DNA of 64,000 bases from Anthoceros angustus (taxonomy: Eukaryota; Plantae; Anthocerotophyta), in assembly GCA_010909165.1 (NCBI GenBank), contig MU008166.1, forward strand, positions 248,001 through 312,000, read 5' to 3'. Positions within the stretch are counted from its first letter, which is position 1. The number at the start of each line of letters is the position of its first letter. The position numbers were made by a program, and so were the translations under genes. The notes below the pieces were generated by a model. It saw nothing but the letters and a program-made list of their open reading frames with translations, did not search any database and was not told the origin of the DNA. Shown piece after piece: positions 1 through 58,432 of this stretch.

Positions 1-807
<807 letters not shown>

Positions 808-2492
808 CTCCCCTGCCGAAATCAAACAAATCAACACAAAACCGTGTTAGCACAAAGTTCCCTTCCAAGCTCTAAAAGCTCTCACTAAAGCAAAGCGAAC
901 CACAGCAAAGCAAAGCAACCCACAGCAAAACAAAGCAAACCAGGAATTGCCCCGCCATTCTGTCCTCCATGCATGCTACTCCTTCCAAGCCCTAGCTCTG
1001 TGGATCCAGAAATGCAGCAAGAATGCGAGCCTCGGCTCACTCACCCGCCGCAGAGTCTGAATTGCTGAGGCGGGAAGGACACGGTCGCTTTGGAGCAGCT
1101 ACAGTTCGAATCGAGCGCGGGGGAAGCAACGGACTCCACTCGACTCCACTCCACTCCAAAGCACTTCACTTCTTCACTTCAGGACTTCACGTCTTCACCT
1201 TCGTGCGGCGTTGAGGGACATAAATAGCGGGAACAGTCATAACGGACGTGCCAGACGCCATCGTCACTCTATCTCATGTTGGAGCATGGAACGCGGGCCA
1301 TCGGGTGGTGAGGAGATCCCAGTCTCCGGCCCGCGGCTCGGGCTGCCATGGCTTCTTGCCTGCTCCCGACCCGCCCTCCTTTCTTGCCGTCTCCCCGAGG
1401 TGCGTCACGTGCTGATTTTTATGGGCGATTAATGCCCCTGGCCCTTCTTGGTCCGGCCAAGCGTGTGTCCGTTTTCCGTTGCCGCCTTGGATTGGGCAAG
1501 GCCTTTCCCTACGTCCGTACTGCGTTAGCTCGGTACAGTGGGTGGCATTGCGGGACATGCTGGCGCGTCACCACCTTGCTTTCCACATTCTGGGGCACGA
1601 GGAAATGATGATCTGCCGGCCGGGAACCAAGCCGGGGCGTTCTTAAACGGGATGAACGTGCAGGCATGGGTCGGAGCTGGGGTTATGAAGGGGATCCAGG
1701 ATCCCAGGATAGCAGGCTCCAGCATCCAGTCTTGTGGAAGCATCAAATCCCTCTCGGTCGCGCTGCGGGCTTCTCGGAGGTGGAGTTGGCGATGGAAGCT
1801 GGGGTCTGGTGAATCGGCCCCTCAACGTGTGTTGCGTGTATGCTTCCTAGTTGTTAAGTAGGTGGAGGTGCAGTTATCAGAAGAGGTGGAGGAATCACAG
1901 CAATATCTTCCTGGTTGAAAAGTGGGTAGATGTTGCGTAAAGGGATTTTAAAGGATCACGCACAAGGTGGGGGATCTTGGGTTCTGTCCGCCCTTCAAAG
2001 ATCGTTTCATCACACCATGGTTTAGGAGAGCAAATCCTGCTTCAAGAAGCAAATGGAGGCTTTGTTTGATAAGGTGTTGTCATAAACTCAGCTGGGCAAG
2101 TCCGGCGGACCCCAGTGCGATGCTTATATGGCATGTTGATGCTATGGGATGTTGGTGAACAGTGGTTGGCAATCTCACCGCCTCGTGAGGGGTAGGAAGA
2201 GGCCACAGCAGGTCCCTAGGGGCTCAAGAGACTCGACTCATATCCTGATCTGCACAGACCAAAGCATGAGGCACGTTACAAGTTACAACACAATTGCTTT
2301 GCTGTTGCAGGAGCCGAAGGAGAACGAAGTGTAAACCCTAAACATGAGCGAGAGAAAACCTAGAAGTTCCCCACGAGAGAGCCGGAGTTGCAGAGGCAGG
2401 CGGGGAAGGGGCACACATGAATGGGCTGGAACAGACGATGGGAGGAGTGGATACCTGCAGGGGAGTTTAGTCGTCAATCTTTGGGCTTCTCT

Positions 2493-2642: not shown

Positions 2643-3005
2643 TTCAGCGACACTAGCCCTAATCTCCTCCACTTCACACGGGCCTCGATCTGCAAGCCAT
2701 GCTGGCCAACACACACGGCCGATGCAGCGCCTTGCAGCACTCCATCGGCCTTTCGGTACTCTTCCTCCAGCGGAAGCGTCTCCTTCTGCTACGACCTTCA
2801 ACGGGGAGGTTTGAATTCGCCGCCTTCCGCTACGATGTGAGCGCAAGTGCTGCAATCACCCTCCGGCGATCAAGAGGCGTTGGACAGTGCAGACGCCAGA
2901 TTTCCGATCCTCGTCAACATGCACTGTCAGATAATTTTTGTTAACCCCAGAATGACCGAGAGTGGTTGTTTGGTTCTTGATTTTTCTGTGAAAATTCCTC
3001 TTATT

Positions 3006-5383
3006 CTAGTCCACTTCTTCGTTTTCTCCTGTACCCTTTGCATCCTGACCCAAAGCAGATGGGTTAAGGTTTGTGGCCCGTATCTCCTTGGGAGGGGTGT
3101 TCTGAGACACACTGGAATGTGTCGGTGAAGCATAAAGAGGGTACCCTTCTTCCATTGGAGGCAAGGTGTGCGGAGTTGCAGATAAATTGTAGGCTGAATC
3201 ATCCCTTGGCAGCTTCAAGGTGGATGAGGTTTGCGTCATTCTCCTGGAGAAGTCTTTGCGGCGTGGAAGTTGTATGGCAGCATCTATGTTGTCCGGGAGG
3301 CCCCTGTGCCTGCCCAGAAACATAACTATCACCACAATTGCCTTGCCAGCGACGCTCCACTTGCCTGAAAAGCTGTAGGGCACGTCCTCGCAGGGGATGG
3401 TTGGCTGGATTTGGCGGGCTAGCTCACAGCTGTATCCGATAGACACTCCCACGTTGCCGTAGGCACTGCATAGGAGACGCATGGATGATTGTCAGCGAGT
3501 CATAATGGCTAACCGTCAACGCTGCAATACCGGGGAGTACTAGTACAGGCAGGAGTGGAAAGCTGCAACTCACCTAATGATCTCAAACACGATGTTCAGG
3601 AGTGAGAAGTTCAGAGGATCCTGCTTGATGTTCTTGTTGTGGATAATGCACAATATAAAGATGGCGATGAATAGGTAAGCAGAATCACGAGCTAGCAGCC
3701 TTCTTGCTTGCATGGATATCTTGCTCCCTACAAGCTCTGACTCCCAGTTCGTAGCATATACCCCAAGATCTGCCTCATTGTAGATGTCCGTCTGTGCCTT
3801 GGTATGCTGACGGGAGAGGAAAACCGGGTGCACTGCGATATACCTGAACGGGCAACAAGTGTTTGAACTCAAGGCCTTGGTGTGAGAACAGCGAGCTGTA
3901 GGTTTCAAGTTGAGATGCTTACATCATGCCCGCATACAGGAAAAGCATGGCTGATGTGAGCTCCACCAAGAAGACCACGTTAAAGCCAGCATTCGAGTGC
4001 TCACAGCCTGGAACAATCCCACCACCATCTTGTAGCCAGCTCCTAACCCTTTCAACGCAGTTGGGCTCCAATCCAAGGTGCAAAACGCAAGGGTTTCCAC
4101 ACCATTGAATGCCATCACCGTGAGAAGCAGCCAGATGGTCTGCTTCCGAGGGAACATGTGAGCGTAGCATCTCCGAGGATGCTCTAACAGGTACTTGTAC
4201 ACCTGCTTCTTGTGGCCGTGAGAGACCGAGTATAAAACCTACACGAAGAACCTCATGCACGGTGCAAAGAGGGTGTTCCCCGCGAGAAAAACAAAGCTGA
4301 CAACAAGAAGCAGGATCACCGATTTCTGGAACGGCACAAAACTGTCATCCAGTAGCGAGATGCCTGCATTCGAGAAGGCAGCCACATGAAGACTGCATAA
4401 AACAACCTATTCACATGCCGCTCTTTCAGCGTCTGCACAGCATCTGCTGCACCGAACAAGTAGAGGGAAATGGCCAGAATGCCAGCCAATTGAACCCCGA
4501 TGAAATAAGCCGGGACAAGCCCGCTGAGAGACAGCAGAGACTCATGCTCCAGAAGCTTGGAAGTGGAAGGTTCCAGAAACGTTCTAGCGTCATCCGATTC
4601 CACACTTGTCATGTAAGAAATCCTGGACTGTTTTCTGGACATAGGTCTGGGTCCCTCTAGTCTGTCGGACAAGGCTCGGGAAATGTTGAGCATCAAAGCG
4701 AGCGTCCTCGCATCCTTTACGGACCCTGAGGACAAGGTGCGGTAGAGTATTTCATCCTGCACTTGCTCGCTGACGGAAAACCTGGTGGGCGACTTCATTG
4801 CCTCCACATCCACGTTTTCCACGTCGCCAGCCACCACCGTGTCTCTGGCCAGCTGATCCATGGCAGCTGCCTTCTCCTTCAGCCTCTGCTCCCGGATGTA
4901 CCTCTTGAAGTAGTGCCTTCTCACCAAAACCGGCAGCAGGGAGAGGAAGACCTGGCTCCCGAGCAGCATCATCAGCACCAGCACAACTTTGTCGAACTGC
5001 GAGAGATGTGCCATCTTGACGGTCACCAGCCCGGTGACATTGAACAGGGCATCGATGAAGGCAATGCCGTCATTGTGCTTGGGAGACAACCAGATGGTGA
5101 GGCTGCCGATGCAGGCCACCAGAATGAAGTAGCAGAGATGAAGGCGGTAGAAGGTGACATGGTTTTCGACAAATTGCTGCACAAGCGGCCTGGCTCGGGC
5201 TGCCAGCCTCTCCATTTTCTTGTATTCCCTATCTCTCCTGGCCTTCAGAGTGGTGAAGAAGCTTGAAAGTACTTTCATGTCGAAATCCCAGCTCCTGACT
5301 GCTCTCTTCCAAGCCTGCTGGAGAAAGGCAGGAAGCTTAAGGTGAGGTTGAGCTCCCCCGGGCTCCATGGCTGCATACGCCAT
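3006..5383 (-). CDS. HKT: HKT/Trk-family cation transporter, 3 exons; disrupted as assembled (2 frameshifts, 1 TAG, short first pore helix)
   Basis: Four pore loops: VTGL, AFSNAG (alternative frame), STRNAG (alternative frame) and AYGNVG.S.GY. Also [46 protein letters not shown]. Introns at about 3924-3846 and 3573-3468. Confidence 0.9.
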
Positions 5384-32505: not shown

Positions 32506-33613
32506 ATGGCAGTGGATCAGCAAACTGCTGTAAGTGGTTAGGATTACTCTTGTCTGTTTCAGAGTTGAGGTGGAGTCGAGAAGGGTGGGCGTATATTTTT
32601 GTTTGCTGAGGACAGGCTTAGTGCGTAGTCCCTTGGGCGAGCGCTTGTGTTTGAACCTGTAGTGTGGGGAGGAATGTAGAGTAGTGGGACTTATGAGTGT
32701 ATTATATTTCATTGTGTGCAGGAGGTTCATCTCAAGTATCTGGACATTTTCCGTTTGATTGTCTTGAAAGCAACGACATATGTAGCAAGTATCTATGAAT
32801 ATGCGAAGGAAAGCTCAGGACCATTGAAACCCGGAGTGGATAGTGTTGAGGGAACGGTGAAGACGGTGGTTGGCCCTGTTTATAAGCAGTTCCACAGCAA
32901 GCCAACCGAGTTCCTTCAGTTCATTGACAGCAAGGTGAGCTAGATTTTTCTAATCGGTGGACTGGGGCGACGTTGAACAGAGCGGTTGCTCACTTTGCAG
33001 GTTTCCTTTCCAGGTGGATGCAGCTGTGTCCCTTCTTGAAGAGGCGTTTCCCCAATTCATTCGACAGACGTCCGTTGTGGCTTATGAGGTGGCCAGTCAA
33101 GCTCCCGAAGCTGCTAGAACCGTCCTGGCGGACGTGAAGGAACAGGGTGTGTATGAGACGGCCAAGAGCTACTACGAGAAGTACGAGCCATATGCTGAGG
33201 AGCTGTCTTACAAGGCGTTCCAGAAGCTCTTGACTTTCCCCTTTGTTCCACAGATCGTGGACCTGGTTGCCCCAACTGCTCTTTACAGCGCCGACAAGCT
33301 GAATCAGGTTGTTCTGCAGTTGAGGGAGCATCATGTGCCACTCTCCGATTACATACCTCGGGTCCCGGTGGAGACGATTGAGAGAATCATCAGGAAGGAA
33401 ACGGCTGCAGCTTCTAAGGACTTGAATGGAGGAGGAGTAGAAGAAACGGGCCCTGAGCCTAAACAACCTACTGAGGCAGAGAAACCTGAAGCAGAGGAGG
33501 CGACATCGGAAGAAGTGAAGTCCTCATCAGAAGAAGGGGAGTCGGCTGAGGATGTAGAACCCAGAAGCGAGGAGAATCCTTCATCAGAGGCAGATGCTCC
33601 CGCCTCTGCTTAG
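32506..33613 (+). CDS. REF/SRPP-family lipid-droplet-associated protein (LDAP), copy 1, with acidic C-terminal tail; exons 32506-32529, 32722-32934, 33014-33613
   Basis: LKYLD.F, YEYAKESSGPLKPGVDSVEGTVKTVVGPVY, P.E.LQFIDSKVD, LSDYIPRVPVETIERI. Splice phases are consistent. Confidence 0.93.
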
Positions 33614-38614: not shown

Positions 38615-38850
38615 TGCCTATCAATACCCGAAGGCCATTAAGGCCTGCCACTCGTCGTACCGCAGGGCCGTAGGTGCCCATGCCCTCCCTATTTCCATGC
38701 ACATCAAATGTACATCATGTGACCATGCCCTAAGATGTACCGGCCGCGGGAGTAAGAAGTCCCGTGGGACGGTGCCGGGTATGTGACTCCGCGGGTTACA
38801 TAATCACGGTTAGTCTGTCGAGTAAGAGATCCCGGGTTAGGAGATCTCAA
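38615..38850 (+). repeat. Left copy of a diverged inverted repeat (TIR-like)
   Basis: ctatcaatacccgaaggccattaaggcctgccactc..taccgca matches the reverse complement of 58362-58428. Weaker blocks (atcacggtta; gggttagg..atct) extend the match inward. Confidence 0.7.
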
Positions 38851-40585: not shown

Positions 40586-42532
40586 TTATTCAATAAAAGA
40601 CATTTTCTTCCGCTTGTCAGACATTGTGTTATGGTCGGTTGCAAGAACTCTCATCTCAGGCACCGTAAGCCCACAGTATACATGCGCTTCAACATATTGA
40701 AAGCAGGACTTCCGGAGCAATATCGCCAAGTGCTTCATAGCAAGATATGTGTGGTTCCCCAAGTACACCCATAATATATTTCTTGGCCCGAATTTCGCCA
40801 TTAACTTGCTAATATCACCCGGGGTCAATCATGCATGAATGGCGTAACCCTTCTTCAATCCTTCCTTGAAATAACTCGGCTAGGTAGTTTGACCATGCCT
40901 CGTCCACCCTCGATTTGGGCATCCGGTGTAATAAAAGATCGGCTTCAAATTCTCAAGCTTTACCGATCGTCTAACAACTTTCTTTGCATAGGCGAGTCAC
41001 GATTATTGTCAATGGGTCGATTCCGGATGGCATCTTCAAGTCTTTCCTCATCATCCGCACATGGGCGATCGCTATGTTATCTGGTGGGCTTCACTCACGC
41101 TTTCCTTCCTGGATTTCTTCTTTCTCTTCCCCCGGTGGAGCCTCGCTATGTGTGGTATGCCCTGTGGCGTGCCCACCATGCCTTGCTCTCCCACTCGAGT
41201 CCCTGTCTCCATACTCTCGGATCGGCGGACACGGAGGTGCCTCAATAGAAGCTCGCCGCCACCACCTTTCGGCCACCGTCTCTTCCGCAACAATTGCAAG
41301 GGCGTGCAATCGGGCGCCGGCCGGCCGGCCCAACCCTTCAGTGCCTTGGGAACCCCGAGCGGTTGGGGTCGGTGTGCAGTCTCGGCCTCTCGCGGGAGGG
41401 CGGCCGGCGGCGCCTCACCCTCGCGGATACCGACCAGGGTACCTCCATGGAGGAGCCGGAAAAGGAATGTCCAGAACGGAGCATCCTTCCATCCTCTGCC
41501 TCCACGAAAGTCGTCATCGTCGGAGTGGCCAAGGGCGTCGGGTATACACCCATCCTCCTCATCGGATGGGCCGAGCTCACTAGCCGCGCTCGGCGTGAGC
41601 CCATCATGCACATTACATGGCTCGGCTCGTCGTTGTGACATTTCCCTCCTATGCTGGATGACGGATTCGGTAATCTTCCCGCATATGGTCGTAATTAGTG
41701 CTCTAGCTTGCTGAGCATCCTGCAAAACAGAAAAAGGATTGAGGAAAGGCAAGACAGAAGGCACAAGTCATGGAAACCAACATACAACGATTTGCATCAA
41801 CTGCCTTGAAAACCTTATTCCAAATTTTTACTTACTATCGACGATAGCATTTCAATCCTCCACGAGTTTGAAGGATCACTTCTTGCTTTGGAAGCCATGT
41901 AGGTGACCTCATAAGCCTTGTACATGGTTTCATCTTCGCTTATCCGATCAAATACCAAAGGCTTTGTTGTACGGCATAAAACCAGCTCTCGTCCATCCAT
42001 ATCCACGCCGCCATAGAACCCCTTGCCTTGCTCTGGTTTTGGCAAGGCCCCTTGAACCCTCGACCCGGTTTCAATAGAGGAGTCCAAAATTGTTCTCCTC
42101 AAGGCTCCTCATCCTGTGTCAACATCCGGTCCTTCTCGGCGAGCAGTGGCCTCCACCTTGCTCCCCAACCGATGTAGTATCCTCATAGTTAAATGGCGTT
42201 GGAATAGGCGCGATTGCACTGGGGTCTCTTCCTCGGTCTCCTCCACTGACCTTCTCCTTCGTTGTGCTGGCCTTCCCAGATGTTAGGCTGCCCGATTTCC
42301 CATGCCCAATTGACAAATTACCTCCAGGGCTGGTGCTTGATGGCCTGGGTTGTATCTGCGCCCCTCCACCGGAGGTAGGCCGCGTGCCTTCTCCAACATC
42401 CACACCCGAAATTCCGCCTGCCGCATCCTTCTTCTTGCTGCTGGGCCGGGATTTCTTGGTTTTGGGCATCGGGTCAGGATGGTCTGCCTCTGGTTCTCCA
42501 CGTTCCTTCCTACTTCGTCTTCCGCTTGCCAT
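40586..42532 (-). pseudogene. Spliced TE accessory gene with C-terminal ParB/Srx-like domain; frameshifted and apparently truncated at the gypsy junction
   Basis: ATG at 42532 (MASGRRSRKER). Phase-0 intron 41835-41720 (GTAAGT..TTTTGCAG). Reconstructed IRNRPIDNNR..MQRKLL..NLKPIF..ILWVYLGNHTYLAMKHL..VYCGLTVPEMRVLATDHNTMSDKRKKMSFIE. Confidence 0.6.
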
Positions 42533-45500
42533 CCTGAAGAGATTAGATACAATCTGCCATAGGAAGCCGCAATTCAAAGAAGGAATCAGCGTCGCACAAC
42601 TTGAAGGAAATTTGCAGAACAGGAAGGGGAGGGCCATCTAAGACTATGTGAATCGCGAAGAGGAAATGGCGGAGGATCGCGCGTGGAGAAGTCGCGTCTT
42701 TGGGAGAGGCAAAAGTCCTTCGCCGAGAGTTGAGCCGGCGAGGCGCCACCGTCCGTCTGGCTGGAAGAACTTGCTCGCTCTCTCGGGTTACTCTCCACTT
42801 GACGAAAGTATGGCCCGTTCGGTCACGTCATACACATGTCCAACCCTAACCATAAATGTCAATTAAGGTAATGCTTACATGGAAAACCATTTATAGGACC
42901 CTAAGTCAAAAGCCGTACATATGAACCCCAATGCAGAAAACAATGAAGAGTGTGCAGCCGCCAAGATCTACGGTGAAGATCTTTCGGTTTATTTGCTCAT
43001 AATGGCATTTCCACCTTACCTTGATCCACGATGCCTATGTCATGGCATACCACGCTCGTGAAGAGTGAGGACCATATTTCCAGAGGTTAGAGGTGCGGAG
43101 TCCTCGTGGCGACAATGTTGCGCGCCACACACACATCAGTTGTCGAAGAGGTCAGAGTTTTTCGTCCACAAAGTTCATTCCGCACTTCGTTTGTGCGATC
43201 AAGGGGGAACATGTACTTGAGAACAAGTGTTGGGTTTGCATCAGTCTCACCGTCTCTGTTCAGTCCATGTAATGACCTGACATTGATGTTGTCGCAGCAG
43301 GAACAGTGTGAGGAAGAGGGGTCTTTTGATTTCCAGATGGTAGGAGACTCTCTTGTGAGGAGCCGAAGGATGGCTGTACTGAATGGGGCCCCCGCGGCCC
43401 TTCCCGATCATGAGCAACGAAAACGAGTCCGAACTCCAGAAGGTTAGTTTGCCTTCAACAAGAAAGCGACTTGTTTGCGGTGAAGACAATGTTGTGGCGA
43501 ATAGTCCACCCCATCCGTGGCGGATTCCATCTCATGCACACCGCAGAAGTGGTATTGCGGTAATGCTCGTCGCCATCGCCGGAGTGGCCAGGGACGTGTA
43601 CACCCATCCTCCTCATCGGATGGGCCGAGCTCACTAGCGCATCGGCCGGCGTGAGCCCATCATGCACATTCTCGTCAAGCCGGGCTCGACTCGTTGTGAC
43701 ATTTCCTCCTATCTTTGGATGACGGATTCGGTAATCTTCCCGATATATGGTCGTAATTAGTGCTCTAGCTTGCCGAGCATCCTGCAAAACAGAAAAAGGA
43801 TTGAGGAAAGGCAAGACAGAAGGCACAAGTCATAGAAACCAACATACCACGATTTGCATCAATTGACTTGAAAACCTTATTCCAAAGTTTTACTTACTAT
43901 CGACGATAGCATTTCAAATCCTCCACCAGTTTGAAGGATCACTTGCTTTGGAAGCCATGTAGGTGACCTCATAAGCCTTGTACATGGTTTCATCTTCGCT
44001 TATCCGATCAAATACCAAAGGCTTTGTTGTGCACGATCAAACATGTGCTCGTCCATCCATATCCACGCCGCCATAGAACCCAGCCCCTTGCTCTCGGTTT
44101 GGCAAGGCCCCTTGAACCCTACGACATTCAATAGAGGAGTCCAAAATTGTTCTCCTCAAGGCTCCTCATCCCGTGTCAACATCCGTCCTTCTCGACAGTG
44201 GCCTCCACCTTGCTCCCCAACCGACGATGGCAACAGATCCTCATAGTTAAATGGCGTTGGAATAGGCGCTGCACTTGTGGGGTCTCTTCCTCCTCCTCGC
44301 AGCCTTCTCCTTAGCCGGCCTTCCGGATGTTAGGCTGCCCGATTTCCCATGCCCAATTGACAAATTACCTGTGGTGCTTGATGGCTGGTTGTATCGCGCC
44401 TCCACCGGAGGTAGGCCGCGTTTTCTCCGACATCCACACGAAATTCCGCCGCATCCTTCTTCGCCGGCCGGGATTTCTTGGTTTTGGGCATCGGGTCGAT
44501 GTTCTCGCCTCGTTCTCCACGTTCCTTCCTACTTGCCTTCCGCTTGCCATCCTCAAGAGATTAGATACAATCGCCATAGGAAGCCAATGAATTCAAAGAA
44601 GGAATCCGCACAACTTGAAGGAAATTTGCGAGCAGGAAGGGGAGGGCCATACCAAGACTATGTGAATCGCGCGAAGAGGAAATGGCGGAGGATCGCAGCG
44701 TGGAGAAGTCGCCGGGAGACGGCCAAAAGTCCTTCGCCGAGAGTGGCCGAGGCGGCCGCCACCGCTCCGTCTGGCTGGAAGAACTTGCTCGCCTCTCGTG
44801 GTTACTCTCCACTGAATCGAAAGTATGACGCCTGCTCGGTCACGCCATACACATGTGCAACCCTAACCATAAATGTCAATTAAGGTAATGCTTACATGGA
44901 AAACCATTTATAGGACCCTAAGTCAAAAGCCGTATATGTGAACCCCAATGCAGAAAACAATGAAGAGGCGGTGTGCCTCGACCGCCAAGATCTACGGTGA
45001 AGATCTTTCGGTTTATTTGCTCATAATGGCATTTCCACCTTACCTTGATCCACGATGCCTATGTCATGGCATACCACGCTCGTGAAGAGTGAGGACCATA
45101 TTTCCAGAGGTTAGAGGTGCGGAGTCCTCGGGCGACAATGTTGCGCCACACACATCGGTTGTCGAAGAGGTCGAGTTTTTCGTCCACAAAGTTCATTCCG
45201 CACTTCGTTTGTGCGATCAAGGGGAACATGTACTTGAGAACAAGTGTTGGGTTTGCATCGGTCTCCGTCTCTGTTGATCCATGTAATGACGACATTGATG
45301 TTGTCGCCGAGCAGTGTGAGGAAGAGGGGTCTTTTGATTTCCAGATGGTAGGAGACTCTCTTGTGAGGAGCCGAAGGATGGCTGTACTGAATGGGGCCCC
45401 CGCGGCCCTTCCCGATCATGAGCAACGAAAACGAGTCCGAACTCCAGAAGGTTAGTTTGCCTTCAACAAGAAACAGCTTGTTTGCGGTGAAGACAATGTT

Positions 45501-45580
45501 GTGGCCGAATAGTCCACCCCATCCGTGGCGGATTCCATCTCATGCACACCGCACGAAGTGGTATTGCAGGTAATGCTCGT
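41515..45580. repeat. ~2.06-kb direct tandem duplication (41515-43575 and 43577-45580)
   Basis: cggagtggcca..acacccatcctcctcatcggatgggccgagctcactag occurs at 41520 and 43580, and the copies are collinear throughout. They differ by dense 1-6 bp indels. Confidence 0.9.
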
Positions 45581-48500
45581 CGCCGTCGACAAGCGTCCTC
45601 TCCCGGCATTCCGCGTGGGGTGCCCATGACCCCGTGAACTTGAACTTATATCGCCATTGATGGGAATCACGCATCCGGCGAAGACACGGAAGGAAGGGAG
45701 ATGGGGTGCGAGAATCCCCTCGTGGTTTGTTCCGCCAAGGAGCGATGTCGAGGATGACCGCAGGATCGAGTTCTTCCCACAAGCAAATGATCCGTGGGCG
45801 AGGATGACCGCAGGATCGAGTTCTTCCCACAAGCAAATGATCCGTGGATCGAGGATGGGGATGATGACTTTGTTCACCCTCCTCCGGCTGGTGCATCTGG
45901 AACATTCCATCCCAAGCCTTTAATTGAGACATTGATGACAACAAAGCTTCATGGCGGACAAGCGGACGGCAGCGGGGTGTCTTTGCAAAAATGTGAACTG
46001 GAGAAGGTGACGGCAGACTTTCTTAAACCGTGTTGCAACCAAATGTGCATGCAGAGGTTGACCAAGCAAGGCCTTGAGCAACGATATAGGTTCCTCACAA
46101 TGTGCGAGCAAGAGCGAGACATTTCTTCAAAGCCTCGTACATCGGGACCCGAGTCAAACTAACAAAGAAAGAGTTTTACGCATGTTATGGGATCGGTTCC
46201 TCTGCTGCGTGAAGGCCTTGAGAGTATATTGTATGGGGCACAGATCGAGGAAGGCGAAAGGGAGGGTCATGAGGAATGCCCGTGGGATAGTGTTCGAACC
46301 AACCCAATTCATAAGTCCCGTCATGCACTTGGTGCTCTAGCGTGGATGGATAATGCTTTTGTTCATGGTGAAAAGACTTAGACGTGCGGTGTATAACCTG
46401 CCTGACACCTATACAAAGCTGGAGATATGGTCATTGTACAAACGGCAGTGTCAAAGCTCGTGCAGGTTTGACGTGCGTGGTTTTGAAGTTATGGAAATCT
46501 AACTTCACCGAGTGAAGATTCCCAAATCCAACAGTTCTCGACCGCTCAATATGTCAGGTTAAAGACCACCATTCGAATACAACTCGGAAGGTTGATCAAG
46601 GTAGATATCACTCTACCACTAGTACAACCCATCTGGTGGGAGGAGTTTTCGTTCATCCCATAGTTCGCCGAATGAGCGGTGGTATGCGGATGGTTCAAAA
46701 CTGAGTGTCGGAGGGTGGGCGCCCGCCGCGCCCACCCTCGGATGACCGTTGAAGTTGCTGAGTACCATGTTTGAAACTCGCAGTCCTTGTTCATGGATGG
46801 ACAGGTTGTAGGTTTGATTGGTCGAGTTTGTAGGGGCCAGGCCCCGGGGGCGCCGGCCTGCCGGCGCCCCCTGGGCCCCATCCACCTTCAAACTCGCCAA
46901 CCATAATATATGACCTAGAAGGTGGACGTTTTGTAGATTTTAGATTGGGGAAGATGGTAAATGTATGTGTGAAGAGGTGATAGTCCACGACATCGGTTTG
47001 TTGTATGCAATGGGTTTCATGGATTCTGTCTTCGCTTGTGGTTTGGAAGAAGCGTGTTTGTATGTGTGAAATTGGGAACGTGAAAACTTGGAAGGATGTG
47101 ACACTTGGAGCGTGTTTGGGCGTGGCGAGAAAAATATCGGCGTTAGAGGCACACACGCGTCTCGAGGAGCGGGAAAAATGGCAAAACACCGTGAAAAGAG
47201 TTCTGTGGAACCGGATAAGTACATGCTCCTCGCTATAGACGGAATGGACCGGAAGACCGAGATTCCACACTTTCGCGTTGGCCAAAGAATCTTGATGAGG
47301 ACCGTGTATCTGCGTAGTGGGTTGCATGATCCACAATTATACGACGCAGCAAGAGTGTTTTTGCACTATGCCAATTTGAGGAACGATCACGAATCGACAA
47401 TCGGATTATTCAAGATGTTATTCTTAATTATAAAGGAGTGCTACCCAAAGTGCTCTATTTGCAGCTTGACAACACTTGCCGGAAAACAAGAACCAGCTGT
47501 TGTTTGCGTGTTGAACATGCTAGTTGATATGGGAACTTTTCAAGGTGAAGGTTGGGTTCCTCCTTGTTGGGCACACTCACGACCAAATCGACCAAATGTT
47601 CTCTTGCTTTTCCAAAAGCTTGAAGCACAAGGAGGCACACACTCTTCCGCGTTGGCCGACATCTTGGTTCATGCATACACGCCACACCGGAGATCAAAGT
47701 TTTGCGGAGGTCCGGACTTCGGTCATATGTATGGCCGATTAGACAAGGCGATGGTCGCGCATATTCATCGGCGGTGAGAAAATTGAACAACTTATCTTTC
47801 CAGCCAGTTTAAAATCACCAGAGAAGACAAACCTGTGGTGGTGATGATTAGGAGCAAGCAATATTCGACATCGATGTATTGGGAAACCGAAGCCGGGTTG
47901 GAGTTTTTGAAATTTGTCCCCTCCAACGACATAACAGCTGCACGGCTGTCGGCCCTCCGGGCTCGAGACAAGAAAGGGACGTCGGCAGGGTTATCTCCGA
48001 CGGAAGGAGTGGCACATTTGAGAGCGGGTCTGTCGGAGCTGCGGCCATATGTGACTGGGACAGAATATGGATGGTGGGAAGCATTCTGGGTGGACCAAGA
48101 AGAAATCGCAATAATCGTGGAGAACAACATTGGGCTCGCACTAGAAGTGCCGTGGAAATGGTTCTCTCGGGCAGAATCGGAAGAAAGCAGACAACCACTC
48201 CAAGTTCCCGATGAAGCTATCCTAGAGGAGGCGTTGCTAAGAGAACTCCCCAACGGATATGTACTTGGGGCCTTACCGGCTTGGAAGGCGGCAGAAATGG
48301 CACGCTTGCATGGAGATGTAAAAGACATAAAGGAAGGATGTTCATCGCAGACCTTGTACCGATACGCATAATCGGCCTTCGGATTGGGAAAGTTAATCGG
48401 TGAGGTTGGATGTGGAAGAGCCTCATTTCGTTCACACAATGCGAGCACAGATGCATATGAAGGCAGATACGTGGAAGAATATGTGATTCCAGACCCATCC

Positions 48501-49790
48501 ACTGAGACAATGGGATTGGAAGGAAAAAGGGTGGGAAGGCAAATTTCGAAGAATGTTCAAGAAGTCTTCATCAATAAAACGTCATCTTGTATTATGGGTT
48601 CGGTTTGAATTCCGTAAACATCTCTATTCCATTGACAAAAAGCGATCGAGGATAAGTTGAATGAATTGCGGGCTTCATCGAGCCACCAAAGTGCACCGAG
48701 ATAGTGACGAAGACGGTGAGGACATCGGGCCCTTGGACATGGAAGGTGTCAATTCGGGAGATGAGTGAAAAGATGTATGAAGTGGAGGCAAACATCGGTG
48801 GACATCGGTGACAAGAGGGTTTACTCTCTCGGTCAAGTGTCACCGCCAAGTGTTAGGCTCAAAGTGGGAGCTCGCGTTAGTGATAGGGAATCACTGTTGG
48901 TGCTATCATTCGGTGATCGGAAGTTGAAGAAGTTGGAGTCACTTCCCACGTGTAGGTTGCGGTCGGCGACATGGACAAATGGCGGCGGTGGGCGGCGCCA
49001 CCCATTTTTCACCATCCTCTAGTAGCATGGAAACCGTTTTCGCATCCGTATTGTACATTTTGTTAAATCGATATAACCCATCCGTGACGCATGCCTAAAT
49101 CCTAAATCGTGGAAACCGATAGTTGAAGGCGCCGCCCACCGCTCGAGCCCCTTCTTGCCAAAAACAAAAGACTATGGGTTCGGGGACGGTTCGGAAAGAA
49201 GCACCATTCTTTACCAATGATGACGAAGACGGTGAGGACATCGGGCCCTTGGACATGGAAGGTGTCAATTCGGGAGATGAGTGAAAAGATGGGGAGGCAA
49301 ACATCGGTGGACATCGGTAGACAAGAGGGTTTACTCTCGACCGTCAAGTGTCCGACCGCCAAGTGTTAGGCTCAAAGTGGGAGCTCGCGTTAGTGATAGG
49401 GAATGACCGTTGGTGCTATCATTCGGTGATCGGAAGTTGAAGAAGTTGGAGTCACTTCGGCCGTAGGTTGCGGTCGGCGACATGGACAAATGGCGGGCGC
49501 GCCGTGGCCGCCCGCCATTTTTCACCATCCTTAGTAGCATGGAAACCGCTTTTCCGCACCCGCGTATTGTACATTTTGTTCGCATCAGATATAACCCATC
49601 CGACGCATGCCTAAATCCTACATCGTGGAAACCGATAGTTGAAGGCGCCGCCCACCGCTCGAGCCCCTTCTTGCCAAAAACAAAAGACTATGGGTTCGAC
49701 GGACGGTTCGGAAAGAAGCACCATTCTTTACCAATGATGACGTGAAGATTGCCCAATGTCTTCAAAAGACCTTGTTTATTTAGATGTGCC
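45130..49790 (+). mobile_element. Sola-like DD(D/E) transposase gene, frameshifted
   Basis: PCCNQMCMQRL, PDKYMLLAIDGMD (D at 47238), YLQLDNTCR(E)NKN (D at 47468), FLLVGHTHDQIDQMFS (D at 47590). This spacing resembles Sola1-type D..DN.xxxNKN..FL..GH..D. An acidic C-terminal region (HRDSDEDGEDIGPLDMEG) continues on the plus strand. Confidence 0.7.
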
Positions 49791-50915
49791 TCAACAACCC
49801 GTTCCTTTTAGTCCTTCCGGTACTTATGGTAAGCAAGCATGGGTCGATATGCCAAATTCGATGGCGAACTCGCTAACCCTTTGTGTGATGGAGACACCGC
49901 CCGGACGTCAATTTCATCCCTTATCGACCCTTATTTTCAGGCCTTTTTGGGCGATGTTGCCCAAAGAATGCGACCCATCCCAAACCCCTTCCGACGATAT
50001 TTGGATGAAAACCTCTTCATCAATAAAAGCATCATCTTGTATTATGGGTTCGGTTTGAATTCCGTAAACATCTCTATTCCATTGACAAAAAGCGATCGAG
50101 GATAAGTTGAATGAATTGCGGGCTTCATCGAGCCGTGACCGGCGAGAAAACGGTGAGGACATCGGGCCCTTGGACATGGAAGGTGTCGGGAGATGAGTGA
50201 AAAGATGTATGAAGTGGAGGCAAACATCGGTGGACATCGGTGAACAAGAGGGTTTACTACTCTACAGTGTCTTGACCGCCAAGTGTTAGGCTCAAAGTGG
50301 GAGCTCGCGTTAGTGATAGGGAATCAGTTGGTGCTATCATTCGGTGGGGAAGTTGAAGAAGTTGGAGTCACTTCCAGTAGTAGGTTGCGGCGACATGGAC
50401 AAATGGCGGCGGTGGGCGCGCCCGCCATTTTTCACCATCCTTAGTAGCATGGAAACCGTTTTCCGCACGATCTGCGTATTGTACATTTTGTTAGCTGTAT
50501 ATAACCCATCCGACGCATGCCTAAATCCTACAATTGAAACCCCTTAGGTAGGCCCGGCCACCACGGCTGACCTTCTTGCCAAAAACAAAAGACTATGGGT
50601 TTGAGATGACGGTTCGGAAAGAAGCACCATTCTTTACCAATGATGGTATGAAGATTGTGCAATGTCTTCAAAAGACCTTGTTTATTTAGGCCTCATCAAC
50701 CCGTTCCTTTTAGTCCTTAGGGTACTTATGGTAAGCAAGCATGGGTCGTATTATGCCAAATTCGATGGCGAACTCGCTAACCCTTTGTGTGATGGAGACA
50801 CGGGACGTCAATTTCATCCCTTATCGACCCTTATTTTCAGGCCTTTTTGGGCGATGTTGCCCAAAGCGTGATCGACCCATCCCAAACCCCTTCCGATATT
50901 TGGATGAAAACCTCT
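48540..50915. repeat. Irregular 2-3x tandem reiteration of the transposase 3' region
   Basis: gacggtgaggacatcgggcccttggacatggaaggtgtc recurs at ~48713, 49228 and 50150; cttcatcaataaaa at ~48567 and 50015; aaagaccttgtttattta at ~49765 and 50672. Confidence 0.88.
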
Positions 50916-51339
50916 CTTGTATATTAACCCCTTCCAAGATTAGCATGTTACCAAGAGAAAGATGCTGGAGCGTACTCGGCCCTCTTATACTACGGTTCGC
51001 GCCTTTATATACACCTCTATTCGAATGAGGGGGCCGCAGTGCGCCCTAATCGCTGCCTACTATTCTCCCTATTCCTTCTATCTCCGCCGCTTGGTGGTGG
51101 ATGGCCCCTCGATTCCATCTTTGGCACCGAGCCAAAGCCGAGCCTTGACGATCAGCGCCTAATCGGATGATCCATGAGGCGGGACCTACCTCTCCTCGAG
51201 GGTCAGCCAGCGCACCGGCGGCGGCACGACCATGGCCACCACTAAGTCCTCCTCCTCCTCTTATCTCTCTGGCGGGCCCTGCTAGCCCTCCAAAGATGGA
51301 TCTCGCTGGTCAGGATCGGTGGCTCTCCCCACTCCACTC

Positions 51340-51720
51340 GAGTCTCGACCTCGGGACCCCGCCTCGACCGAGTCCAGGACCTCTAGGTCCGGCCTTCCTC
51401 CGGGGTCCGGCCTTCCTCCGGGGTCCGGCCTTCCTCCGGGGTCCTCCGTCCGGCCTTCTTTCTAGAGTTGGGACCTGGGCCCGGACTTGCCTCGGGTCCG
51501 GGGTCCTCTGGGCCCAACCTTCCCTAGAGTCCTGACCTCGTCCGGTCTCACTAGTCCTGGACCTCTAGGTCCGGCCTTCCTCCGGGTCCTCCGGGGTCCT
51601 TCCTCCGTCCGGCTCACTAGAGTCCTGACCTGGGCCCGGACTTGCCTCGGGTCCTTCCTCCGGGGTCCTTCCTCCCTCCTCCCTCAGAGTCCTGACCTCG
51701 GTCCGGCTCACTAGAGTCTG
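51340..51720. repeat. GC-rich tandem array built on an 18-bp unit ggtccggccttcctccgg, plus larger ctagagtcctgacct units
   Basis: Three perfect consecutive units at 51387-51440, with further degenerate copies. Confidence 0.85.
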
Positions 51721-51799
51721 ACCTCAAAGTCCAGACTTCCTTCAGGGCCGGACTTGAGTTGATTTTCTCAGAGTCAGGACAAAGTCCCACCCACTCGGG

Positions 51800-53663
51800 T
51801 TGCCTCCTCACCGGCTGATCACGGGCTCATCCACTGAGCCCTCCCTTGGTTCCCGAGTGCCCGGTTGCGCCCCTTCCACGGCCTCCCCAGGGCCCTCCTC
51901 CCTTCCGTGCGGAGGTGCAGAGTGCTTACCTCCGGCAGGTCCTTCCTCCGTCCGGCTCCTCCCTCCTCCTCCCTCGCGATGTTGTCATCAAGCAGGCTCC
52001 TAGGGGTCCCTGGTGCTGTTGTCCCGGGTCCTTCCTCCCTCGCCTCCTTCCGAACCTTCCTGGAAGTCCGCTCACCGCCTAGAGTGGCGCAAGACCTCCG
52101 AGCCTTGAGGAGCTCTGCGTGGTAGTAGGCAAAGTCGGAATCGACTTGTTGAATTGCCTCCTCCACATGGGCCCGGGCACCCATTTTCCCTCCGGTGCTC
52201 CGGCGGTGGCATGCTTCACACCTGCCTGCTGCTTACCAACTGCGGTAAAGTGAGACTCCCTCGATACCAAGCTGCCTCCGACACCTCCTGCAGCCTTCTT
52301 CCTTTCACGCTCCTCCTCCCATGGTCATTCCAGCCCGCCGCTTCGGCCATGGAGCCGAGCTCCTCCTTCCCTGTCAGAATCGGGACGAGCAGCCGCCTCC
52401 TCACCGGCTGATCACGGGCTCATCCACCGAGCCCTCCTTGTTCCCGAGTGCCCGGTTGCCTCCCGGCCTCCTGTGGCCCTCCCTTCCTTCCGCATGGAGG
52501 TGCAGAGTGCTTACCTCCGGCAGGTCCTTCCTCCGTCCGGCTCCTCCTTTGCCTCCCTCGCGATGTTGTCATCAAGCAGGCTCCTAGGGGTCCCTGGTGC
52601 TGTTGTCCCGGGTCCTTCCTCCCTCGCCTCCTTCCGAACCTTCCTGGAAGTCCGCTCACCGCCTAGAGTGGCGCAAGACCTCCGAGCCTTGAGGAGCTCT
52701 GCGTGGTAGTAGGCAAAGTCGGAATCGACTTGTTGAATTGCCTCCTCCACATGGGCCCCGGGCACCCATTTTCCCTCCGGTGCTCCGGCGGTGGCATGCT
52801 TCACACCTGCCTGCTGCTTACCAACTGCGGTAAAGTGAGACTCCCTCGATACCAAGCTGCCTCCGACACCTCCTGCAGCCTTCTTCCTTTCACGCTCCTC
52901 CTCCCATGGTCATTCCAGCTCCGCCGCTTCGGCCATGGAGCCGAGCTCCTCCTTCCCTGTCAGAATCGGGACGAGCAGCCGCCTCCTCCGCCTCCGCTTA
53001 TCCTTTCCCTGAGGTCCGCCACTTCCTTCTCCTGGCCGGGCCGATCCCCGTCCGACTCGGCTTCCTCCACCTCCTGCAGCCTCGCGACGTCAAACTCCTG
53101 ACCGCCATTCCCTCCGCCTCCTTCGCCTTCTGCCAAGCCGAGGCGCCTATCTCCTTTCAAGTCTTGGATTCTCCTGCTGAGAATCACTGGCGCGGGCCCT
53201 GGAGTTGTAGCCCAAGGTATCTCGCCTCCAGCCTCGCCGCCGCCTCTACCTCCCTCGCAAGACCCTAAGGTCCCTATTTCTGCGACCTCCAGCCTCCTCA
53301 CTACGACCGGCTTTGCTCTTCACCAGACGGCCTTCAGTTGGTCACTGCTACCCCAAATTGCCTGCCTCCACCGGCCCGATCACGCTGGTAGTGATCCCGG
53401 CCGACTCCGCCTCCTTCCGCGCGTCACCGCGCCGTCTGACAAGTTGGGCCGATGGGCCACCAGTCGCGAGCCCTTCTCCGCCTCCTTCCGCCTCCCCTTC
53501 GTCTGCTAGAGATCTCACTGCTTGGGCCTCCCCGCGCATGCCTCAAATGCTCATCCAAATTGAGGACCTTGGTCCGGTCTTCCTGAATCGCTCGGACCTC
53601 GCGCTCCGCCTCCCGCCGTTTCCCTTCCTCGATGCGGCCGAGGACTTCACCATGCTTTTTCAC
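51800..53663 (-). mobile_element. Fragmented coiled-coil (E/R/A-rich) ORF, probably retroelement accessory; includes a ~595-bp tandem duplication (51800-52395 and 52395-52990)
   Basis: VEEAIQQVDSDFAYYHAELLKARR appears twice; gcctcctcaccggctgatcacgggctcatcca occurs at 51803 and 52396. No enzyme motif seen. Confidence 0.45.
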
Positions 53664-54135
53664 CGTGGGCTACATGTACGTGTGTGGACAATGGGCTCTC
53701 CTTGGGGTTAGGAAATAAGCTGGGTTTGTTTTTTTTCGTAGGTATAGAGTGTAAAATAAGGCGGAAAAGGAGGAATAAGCAGGCGGCCGGACCTGCTCGA
53801 GTGCACTCCGGACTCGGTAGGTAACGGACCCCGCAATGCGCTCAAGGGCCCCGACCACGCAGAACGGGATAAGTCCGACCCCACCCGGTCGAATGGGATA
53901 AGTACGCCAGAAGGTAATTTAGAAGTTGGGGCGTGAGTTAGACAGAGCGCGCCACGTGGCCGGCATGGAAGACGGCAGGCATGCAAAGAGCCAGGACTGT
54001 ACGCCGCAAAGCGTTATAAGCAGTATTCACGCCCGCTGCATCGCGCGACAAACAGAAGGCCGTGAGTAGGCGGAAGCGTATAGGCAGAGTAAGCCATGTG
54101 CTCTCGACGGACAAAGAAGAGCCACCCTCCGCTGA

Positions 54136-58239: not shown

Positions 58240-58432
58240 TCCCTAACCCAGATTTCCTACCTGAATGGTGGTAACCGTGATCTCATTCTACACCGCTACG
58301 GTCCGACGGAACGAGCTTGAAACCATGGTAGCATATATGCATAGCATGATCTCGGAAAGGCCATGGCCTGCCACGGGCGTGCGGTATGGTGAGTGACAGG
58401 CCTTAATGGCCTTCGGAGATTGATAGAGGCAG
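58240..58432 (-). repeat. Right copy of the diverged inverted repeat (TIR-like), ~340 bp upstream of the MULE ATG
   Basis: gcggtatggtgagtgacaggccttaatggccttcggagattgatag is a reverse-complement match to 38617-38665. Confidence 0.7.

Follow-up and report, generated by a model that had tools for sequence, protein, structure and literature searches.

Gene content of the locus

We analysed a window of 64,000 nucleotides (nt) of the Anthoceros angustus genome (assembly GCA_010909165.1, contig MU008166.1, positions 248,001 to 312,000 of the forward strand; positions given below are those of the window), in which two degraded genes lie head-to-head between positions 40586 and 48371. The plus strand carries the pseudogene of a Sola1-type (DUF7869) transposase (45657-48371), and the minus strand carries an accessory gene that opens with an ATG at 42532 (42532-42530) and runs leftwards to a truncation at 40586. 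An earlier note on this DNA, made from its letters alone, had proposed a two-gene, cut-and-paste element of Sola type at this place, and both of the genes that it named are genuine remnants. The stretch is most probably what is left of a Sola1-type cut-and-paste DNA transposon, a dead copy truncated on the left, from a lineage in which the transposase and an accessory gene occupy opposite strands. The two-gene design is supported, with the qualification that the copy itself (40586-48371) is dead, internally duplicated and truncated, and can perform none of the functions proposed for its family.

The transposase pseudogene

The transposase was recognised by Pfam, by tblastn to an intact homologue and by a motif match to Sola1-1_Ec32, a curated element of the brown alga Ectocarpus. 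Read from the sequence, it contains CCNQMC (46031-46048), AIDGMD (47232-47249), LQLDN (47459-47473), ENKN (47482-47493) and VGHTHDQIDQMF (47566-47601), and its last codon is at 48368. All of the motifs previously described for a plus-strand transposase (IDGMD, QLDN..ENKN and FL.VGHTH..ID) could thus be located, though AIDGMD, LQLDN, ENKN and VGHTHDQIDQMF are spread over three different frames. At least six frame changes interrupt the gene, and in-frame stops occur near 47760-47770, close to the catalytic core. As the core motifs lie in three frames and are accompanied by stop codons, the transposase is a pseudogene. The split catalytic triad is a mark of this decay and is no argument against Sola1 ancestry.

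A 72-aa piece (47524-47739, plus strand) matches Pfam DUF7869 (E=1.7e-14), and a metagenome scan with this piece recovered eleven loci. Intact homologues match DUF7869 at E=1e-50, including an uninterrupted 973-aa transposase (L005:216-3134); a 672-aa homologue on another contig, L013, was also aligned. A word-based protein search with the 229-aa transposase open reading frame (ORF) gave no match. By tblastn against the 973-aa homologue, window positions 46031-46120 align to residues 169-199, 46395-46466 to residues 284-307, and 47175-48356 to residues 404-801. Between the last two of these blocks, 709 nt of the window correspond to 97 residues of the homologue, and a surplus of approximately 480 nt, which may be an insertion or an intron, can be placed at 46580-47060 with approximate borders. 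This extra sequence holds an imperfect (~79%) palindrome of 86-89 nt at 46815-46903, visible as an inverted self-match. The 5′ region contains a 50-nt tandem duplication of 2.2 copies (45749-45857; Tandem Repeats Finder, 96% matches), across which the peptide EDDRRIEFFPQANDPW is read twice.

Near-identical copies of the transposase, full of stops, occur on three contigs from different metagenomes (L006, L007 and L008). Their DNA is AT-rich (GC 0.35-0.37) and, under the standard code, has no ORF reaching 150 aa. A source organism with a different genetic code may explain this, as may heavy decay or a high intron content.

The assignment to Sola1 was made by comparison of the catalytic core. The window carries LQLDN, ENKN and VGHTHDQIDQMFSCFSKSLK (also read as LLVGHTHDQIDQMFSCFSKSLK), the signature of the Sola1 core, and the printed Sola1-1_Ec32 transposase contains VQVDNTVAENKN and MMVGHTHIQIDQIFSCFAKAVKG; common to both are DNT..ENKN and VGHTH.QIDQ.FSCF.K. 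The VGHTH string is found in no other protein of the Ectocarpus transposable element protein library, which covers other superfamilies. At the level of the catalytic core, as judged from these motifs, the pseudogene is a member of Sola1. The same transposase superfamily includes Sola1-1_PPa, a moss element held in Repbase and named as the best blastp match in the Ectocarpus supplement, and Sola1 was therefore already known in land plants.

The accessory gene and its relatives

From its ATG, exon 1 of the accessory gene occupies 41836-42532 on the minus strand and requires a frame change near 42100-42120. It is followed by a predicted phase-0 GT-AG intron of 116 nt (41835-41720); as had been noted, the sequence offers a GTAAGT donor, a pyrimidine tract and a CAG acceptor. 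Exon 2 (40829-41719) is decayed. Read in three frames, it includes an ORF at 41072-41764 of acidic and then basic low-complexity sequence, a layout that resembles that of one protein relative (P0004) and of a further locus (L002), and then a broken stretch at 41075-40830 in which several more frame changes are needed. The last surviving ORF (40589-40828) encodes 80 aa and ends at a stop codon at 40586-40588. None of the exon pieces, each searched separately, gave a family match.

Within the accessory gene, homologues were found for the 80-aa ORF only. Its C-terminus reads as the earlier note had quoted it, and residues 18-80 (40589-40777) correspond to the C-terminal half of a ParB-like domain, with the pattern GNHT ... 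GLT..EMR ... DHN ... MSFIE. Proteins of another organism contain a GGNH(S/T)...DHN...FSFID domain to which these last 63 residues are homologous. A HMMER search of 1.8 billion representative proteins returned P0001 (E=1.6e-6) and P0003 (E=3.5e-4), and a word search added P0004 as a relative; the 80-aa ORF is 39-45% identical to these three. Columns common to the ORF and its relatives are V, GNH, A, L, EA, V, GLT, EMR, T, HN, RK and F. Moreover, a profile from which the window row was left out matches the ORF with E=2.9e-15 across its positions 79-142. Word searches with P0003 and with the family alignment returned the same three relatives only. No further members were found in metagenome and viral scans with the ParB-like alignment, or by tblastn of the domain against phages at E-values up to 10.

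The N-terminal half of the domain would be expected in the frame-broken stretch at 41075-40830. For this half a reconstruction reading R.ID..R...L..L..PI had been put forward; no match to it was obtained, not even with X placed at the breaks to read across them. It is unsupported, since no counterpart of the relatives' N-terminal half can be detected in the window.

A methyltransferase in the closest relatives

The earlier note had suggested that intact copies may continue into a methylase, and for the closest relatives this is the case. P0005, another homologue of the 80-aa ORF and a cluster mate of P0001 at 90% identity, lies on a 3.3-kb contig (L016) that encodes, on one strand and in this order, a low-complexity N-terminal region, the ParB-like domain and an ORF (2709-3260) matching Pfam N6_N4_Mtase (PF01555; E=3.1e-6, 27.7 bits against a curated cutoff of 26.7). 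This methyltransferase keeps the P.QKP and D.CCGSGSG motifs, the latter with the S-adenosylmethionine-binding GSGSG. The motif IV position (L016:2500-2620, plus strand) reads DLPRG instead of (D/S/N)PP(Y/F), and one stop and two frame changes interrupt the contig; judged from its sequence, the methyltransferase may be non-catalytic or may simply be a decayed copy. The nearest phage matches of the relatives' methyltransferase are annotated as DNA methylases.

A second methyltransferase gene, on L013 (2493-2981, minus strand), matches PF01555 at E=1.8e-8 and is 39% identical to the first (E=5e-16). The same contig carries the 672-aa DUF7869 transposase (2-2017, plus strand) that is homologous to that of the window, 470 nt away on the opposite strand. 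As this adjacency is seen in an unrelated contig, the pairing of transposase and methyltransferase recurs. The earlier note had also considered that the two genes might never be linked in other copies; the methyltransferase beside a DUF7869 transposase on L013 answers this.

Both methyltransferases belong to the same family, PF01555, as the amino-methyltransferases of phages and plasmids. In contrast to the latter, the gene is eukaryotic and borne by a transposon, and it has a long disordered N-terminus; on L016 the methyltransferase follows a ParB-like domain in one gene. The four phage methylases that we compared lack a ParB domain, as judged by gene size or, for one long gene, by Pfam.

No methyltransferase motif had been seen in the window, and we confirmed this. 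A motif scan found no (D/N/S)PP(Y/F) in a plausible context, neither tblastn nor a hidden Markov model search detected a remnant in the window, and nothing there matched the methyltransferase of the relatives. The methyltransferase is absent because the copy is truncated at 40586, whereas its closest relatives keep it.

Relationship of the accessory domain to ParB

The surviving peptide had been assigned to the ParB/sulfiredoxin core. This assignment reached significance in none of Pfam, PHROGs, NCBIfam, PADLOC, a PDB sequence profile, hhalign and two AlphaFold runs. Neither ParB_N nor any other ParB-clan family was matched by the window ORF, P0001, P0003 or P0004 in Pfam, PHROGs, NCBIfam or PADLOC at E-values up to 10 (up to 1 for P0004 in Pfam), and the PDB sequence profile search with the domain returned no match. 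The hhalign comparison with the Escherichia coli ParB-like protein YbdM gave a probability of 0.2, and a comparison with a long phage methylase, which itself lacks a ParB domain, was also negative. AlphaFold runs on alignments of four and five sequences reached a predicted local distance difference test (pLDDT) score of only 37 and 41, which makes the models unusable, and Foldseek on the second model returned noise. In addition, the arginine of the GxxR motif is replaced by S/T. All but the phage methylase and Foldseek results favour the alternative that a different kind of domain, as yet without a name and serving in DNA binding or regulation, lies upstream of the methyltransferase and merely imitates the G-x-H-x..A / HN pattern.

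We consider such mimicry unlikely. The GNHT..A and DHN motifs are both present in the ORF, and the order of strands and helices in the low-confidence model fits the ParB core. The ESM-Atlas neighbours, which we treat as leads only, fall for both queries in DUF6551, DUF3723 and ParB_N clusters (0.89-0.96): for the 80-aa ORF they are DUF6551 (0.90), DUF3723 (0.89) and ParB_N (0.89), and for residues 195-346 of P0004 they are DUF3723 (0.96) and ParB_N (0.92). Moreover, the published accessory protein of Sola1 combines a ParB-like domain with a DNA methyltransferase (PMC12477816). From the motif layout, these neighbours and the context of methyltransferase fusion, we infer that the accessory domain probably adopts a ParB fold. 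An unnamed cnidarian cluster (0.96) was also a nearest neighbour of the domain in the ESM-Atlas.

Fusions and associations of this kind are known elsewhere. Dam-type methylases fused to ParB and helix-turn-helix domains occur in chlorophytes and chytrids (PMC4738411), and in the Plavaka elements of red algae the accessory gene PAG3 combines ParB with a 2-oxoglutarate (2OG) oxygenase. PAG3 and the DUF3723 proteins of fungal Starships are likewise accessory proteins of transposons, with or near a ParB-like domain; they differ in having other transposase or recombinase partners and other effectors (2OG oxygenase, or unknown). The DUF3723 proteins of Starships are possibly linked to the accessory domain at a distance, a lead from the language model without an alignment.

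Duplication, truncation and surroundings of the copy

The copy has been enlarged by a tandem duplication of 2.05 kb, overlooked in the earlier note, which spans 41510-45588. Copy A (41510-43578) holds the 5′ half of the accessory gene and the intergenic region, and copy B (43569-45588), which is more broken, abuts the 5′ region of the transposase. The two are 89.9% identical over 2118 columns (blastn) and differ by 154 substitutions and 45 small indels, with 79 transitions against 75 transversions. A ratio close to 1 together with so many indels is unusual for plain methylation-driven decay. Before the duplication, the start codons of the two genes were approximately 1.1 kb apart.

At its left side, the accessory gene ends against an unrelated repeat (junction 40585/40586), with the downstream linker and the methyltransferase missing. 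Homology of the ORF stops exactly at its last codon, whereas in the relatives FSFID is followed by further sequence, (R/K)V(R/K)Y(I/M)R. We aligned one DNA run (X1), which holds 7% of the window's words, to the window at 80% likeness. Summed contig depth is ~300 (298) on 40601-41000, where the ORF at 40589-40828 is the most repeated part; it falls to ~20 left of 40600 and to zero on 41001-42400, and is 40-120 on parts of the intergenic region. It follows from this profile that the ParB-like part belongs to a high-copy family and that a different repeat begins at ~40586. A junction with a gypsy element had been claimed at ~40585. The junction is confirmed at ~40586; the gypsy identity of the left neighbour is not, as no retroelement domain was found in its two largest ORFs.

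Most X1 contigs carry an additional G after 40877 and an additional CGTTG, CT or T after 40815, and therefore at least some other copies differ at two of the frame breaks of this one.

The only large inverted repeat (69 nt, 81% identity; 38618-38686 and 58358-58426) brackets 19.8 kb, and encloses both the copy and an ORF with a MULE transposase domain (PF10551; 56420-56980, minus strand, E=1.5e-14). The copy therefore appears to be nested in a MULE-like element, which the earlier note had also overlooked. No exact target site duplication (TSD) of 8-11 bp was found for this outer repeat. To the right of the transposase, no inverted repeat pairing with that region was seen in the window, the left end having been lost at 40586. 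The earlier note had placed the end of the element at 49790, where there is no demonstrable boundary, and no single boundary enclosing both genes could be recognised.

From 200 nt after the transposase stop, 48565-50915 consists of about three tandem copies of a 0.5-0.9-kb unit at 88-92% identity. The red-alga paper describes repeat arrays beside ParB-type accessory genes as possible binding sites. Further right, 51000-54000 is a GC-rich block (0.60-0.64) with tandem repeats of 18, 67 and ~155-180 nt and a strong negative GC skew. Left of the copy lies a host gene (32957-33613, plus strand), a clean ORF of 218 aa that contains a domain of the REF (rubber elongation factor) family (E=1.4e-32). 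As this ORF is clean, the assembly is sound outside the repeats.

Do the two genes belong together?

Several points weigh against a single two-gene lineage. For the relatives of the accessory ORF there are only two source runs, whose accession numbers are adjacent, and these sequences too are broken by a stop and by changes of frame. The similarity to ParB never became significant in a profile or fold test. The link to the transposase takes two steps, from the window ORF to L016 and then from the methyltransferase of L016 to that of L013, and the genes on L013 are convergent (tail-to-tail) whereas those of the window are divergent (head-to-head). The lack of X1 depth over 41001-42400 means that the parts of the accessory gene are unequally repeated. 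Finally, no other two-gene copy from the same genome was present among the data examined, and neither terminal inverted repeats (TIRs) nor a TSD were found for this copy.

Some of these points would be expected if the ParB-like stump and the transposase came from two different elements brought together in a pile-up of transposons. The region is indeed made up of repeats nested within a MULE-like structure, the accessory gene breaks off at another repeat, X1 depth differs strongly between parts, and the arrangement on L013 is unlike that of the window. Nevertheless, we regard chance adjacency as distinctly improbable. Pairing on opposite strands has been published for Sola1-1_Ec32 (PMC12477816) and is seen again on L013. 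Moreover, there are no inverted repeats between the two genes that could represent the abutting ends of separate elements; the only repeat there is the direct tandem duplication. The tail-to-tail layout of L013 indicates that gene order in the lineage is not fixed.

That the frame breaks are assembly errors in an intact or even active copy is hardly credible. In favour of it, the tandem copies do differ by many small indels with a transition/transversion ratio of ~1, and indels at 40815 and 40877 set most X1 contigs apart from the window. Against it, host ORFs in the window such as the REF-domain gene are clean, half of the aligned X1 contigs match the window at 99% identity or more, and stop codons are present besides the frameshifts. 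Nor can base-calling account for the truncation at 40586 or for the 2-kb duplication, both of which are defects of structure.

Comparison with known Sola1 elements and implications

The reading of the stretch as a dead Sola1-type copy with an accessory gene is best judged beside Sola1-1_Ec32 of Ectocarpus (Genome Biol 2025, PMC12477816). This 21.5-kb family carries, opposite its transposase, a gene for a protein of 1104 aa with a ParB-like domain and an N6A/N4C DNA methyltransferase, and its authors propose that such accessory proteins bind and modify their own element (PMC12477816). According to the supplement it has 282-bp TIRs and a 4-bp TSD, and its best match is a moss Sola1 transposase (PMC12477816). 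The statement that Sola elements are normally transposase-only is thus out of date. Sola1-1_Ec32 is autonomous, whereas the copy described here is truncated and duplicated, and has neither the methyltransferase nor recognisable ends. The former comes from a brown alga and the latter from a land plant, and the likeness of their accessory proteins is one of description, not of direct alignment.

Publication of this design for a brown alga dates from 2025 (PMC12477816), and the copy is therefore an ordinary further example of it, namely of a gene for a ParB-like domain and a phage-type DNA methyltransferase beside the transposase. A literature search found no publication on such a Sola1 and ParB/methyltransferase design in land plants. 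On its own this copy adds little, being dead and without methyltransferase or ends. The useful by-products of the analysis are two independent pieces of evidence for the links within the design: L016, which joins the ParB-like domain to the methyltransferase, and L013, which places the methyltransferase beside a Sola1 transposase.

Judging from domain content and the literature, the transposase of live members would excise and reinsert the element by cut-and-paste. The accessory protein would bind the element's own DNA and mark it or shield it from silencing, and would perhaps methylate it.

More tentatively, the gene for the ParB-like domain and methyltransferase could be an old and regular partner of a Sola1 lineage that extends over brown algae, land plants and whichever eukaryotes gave rise to L013 and L016, in which the methyltransferase has turned non-catalytic (as the DLPRG at motif IV of L016 would suggest) and the GNH[ST] ParB-like domain is related to the DUF3723 proteins of Starships. 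We hold this joint reading to be doubtful; if true, it points to a common module of 'self-DNA recognition' that has been reused by unrelated giant transposons.

A transposon that encodes a protein for binding and modifying DNA could use it to mark or protect copies of itself, which is relevant to the ways in which elements evade or enlist silencing by the host. For algae the design is already on record; its remains in a land plant widen the host range and suggest an old partnership.

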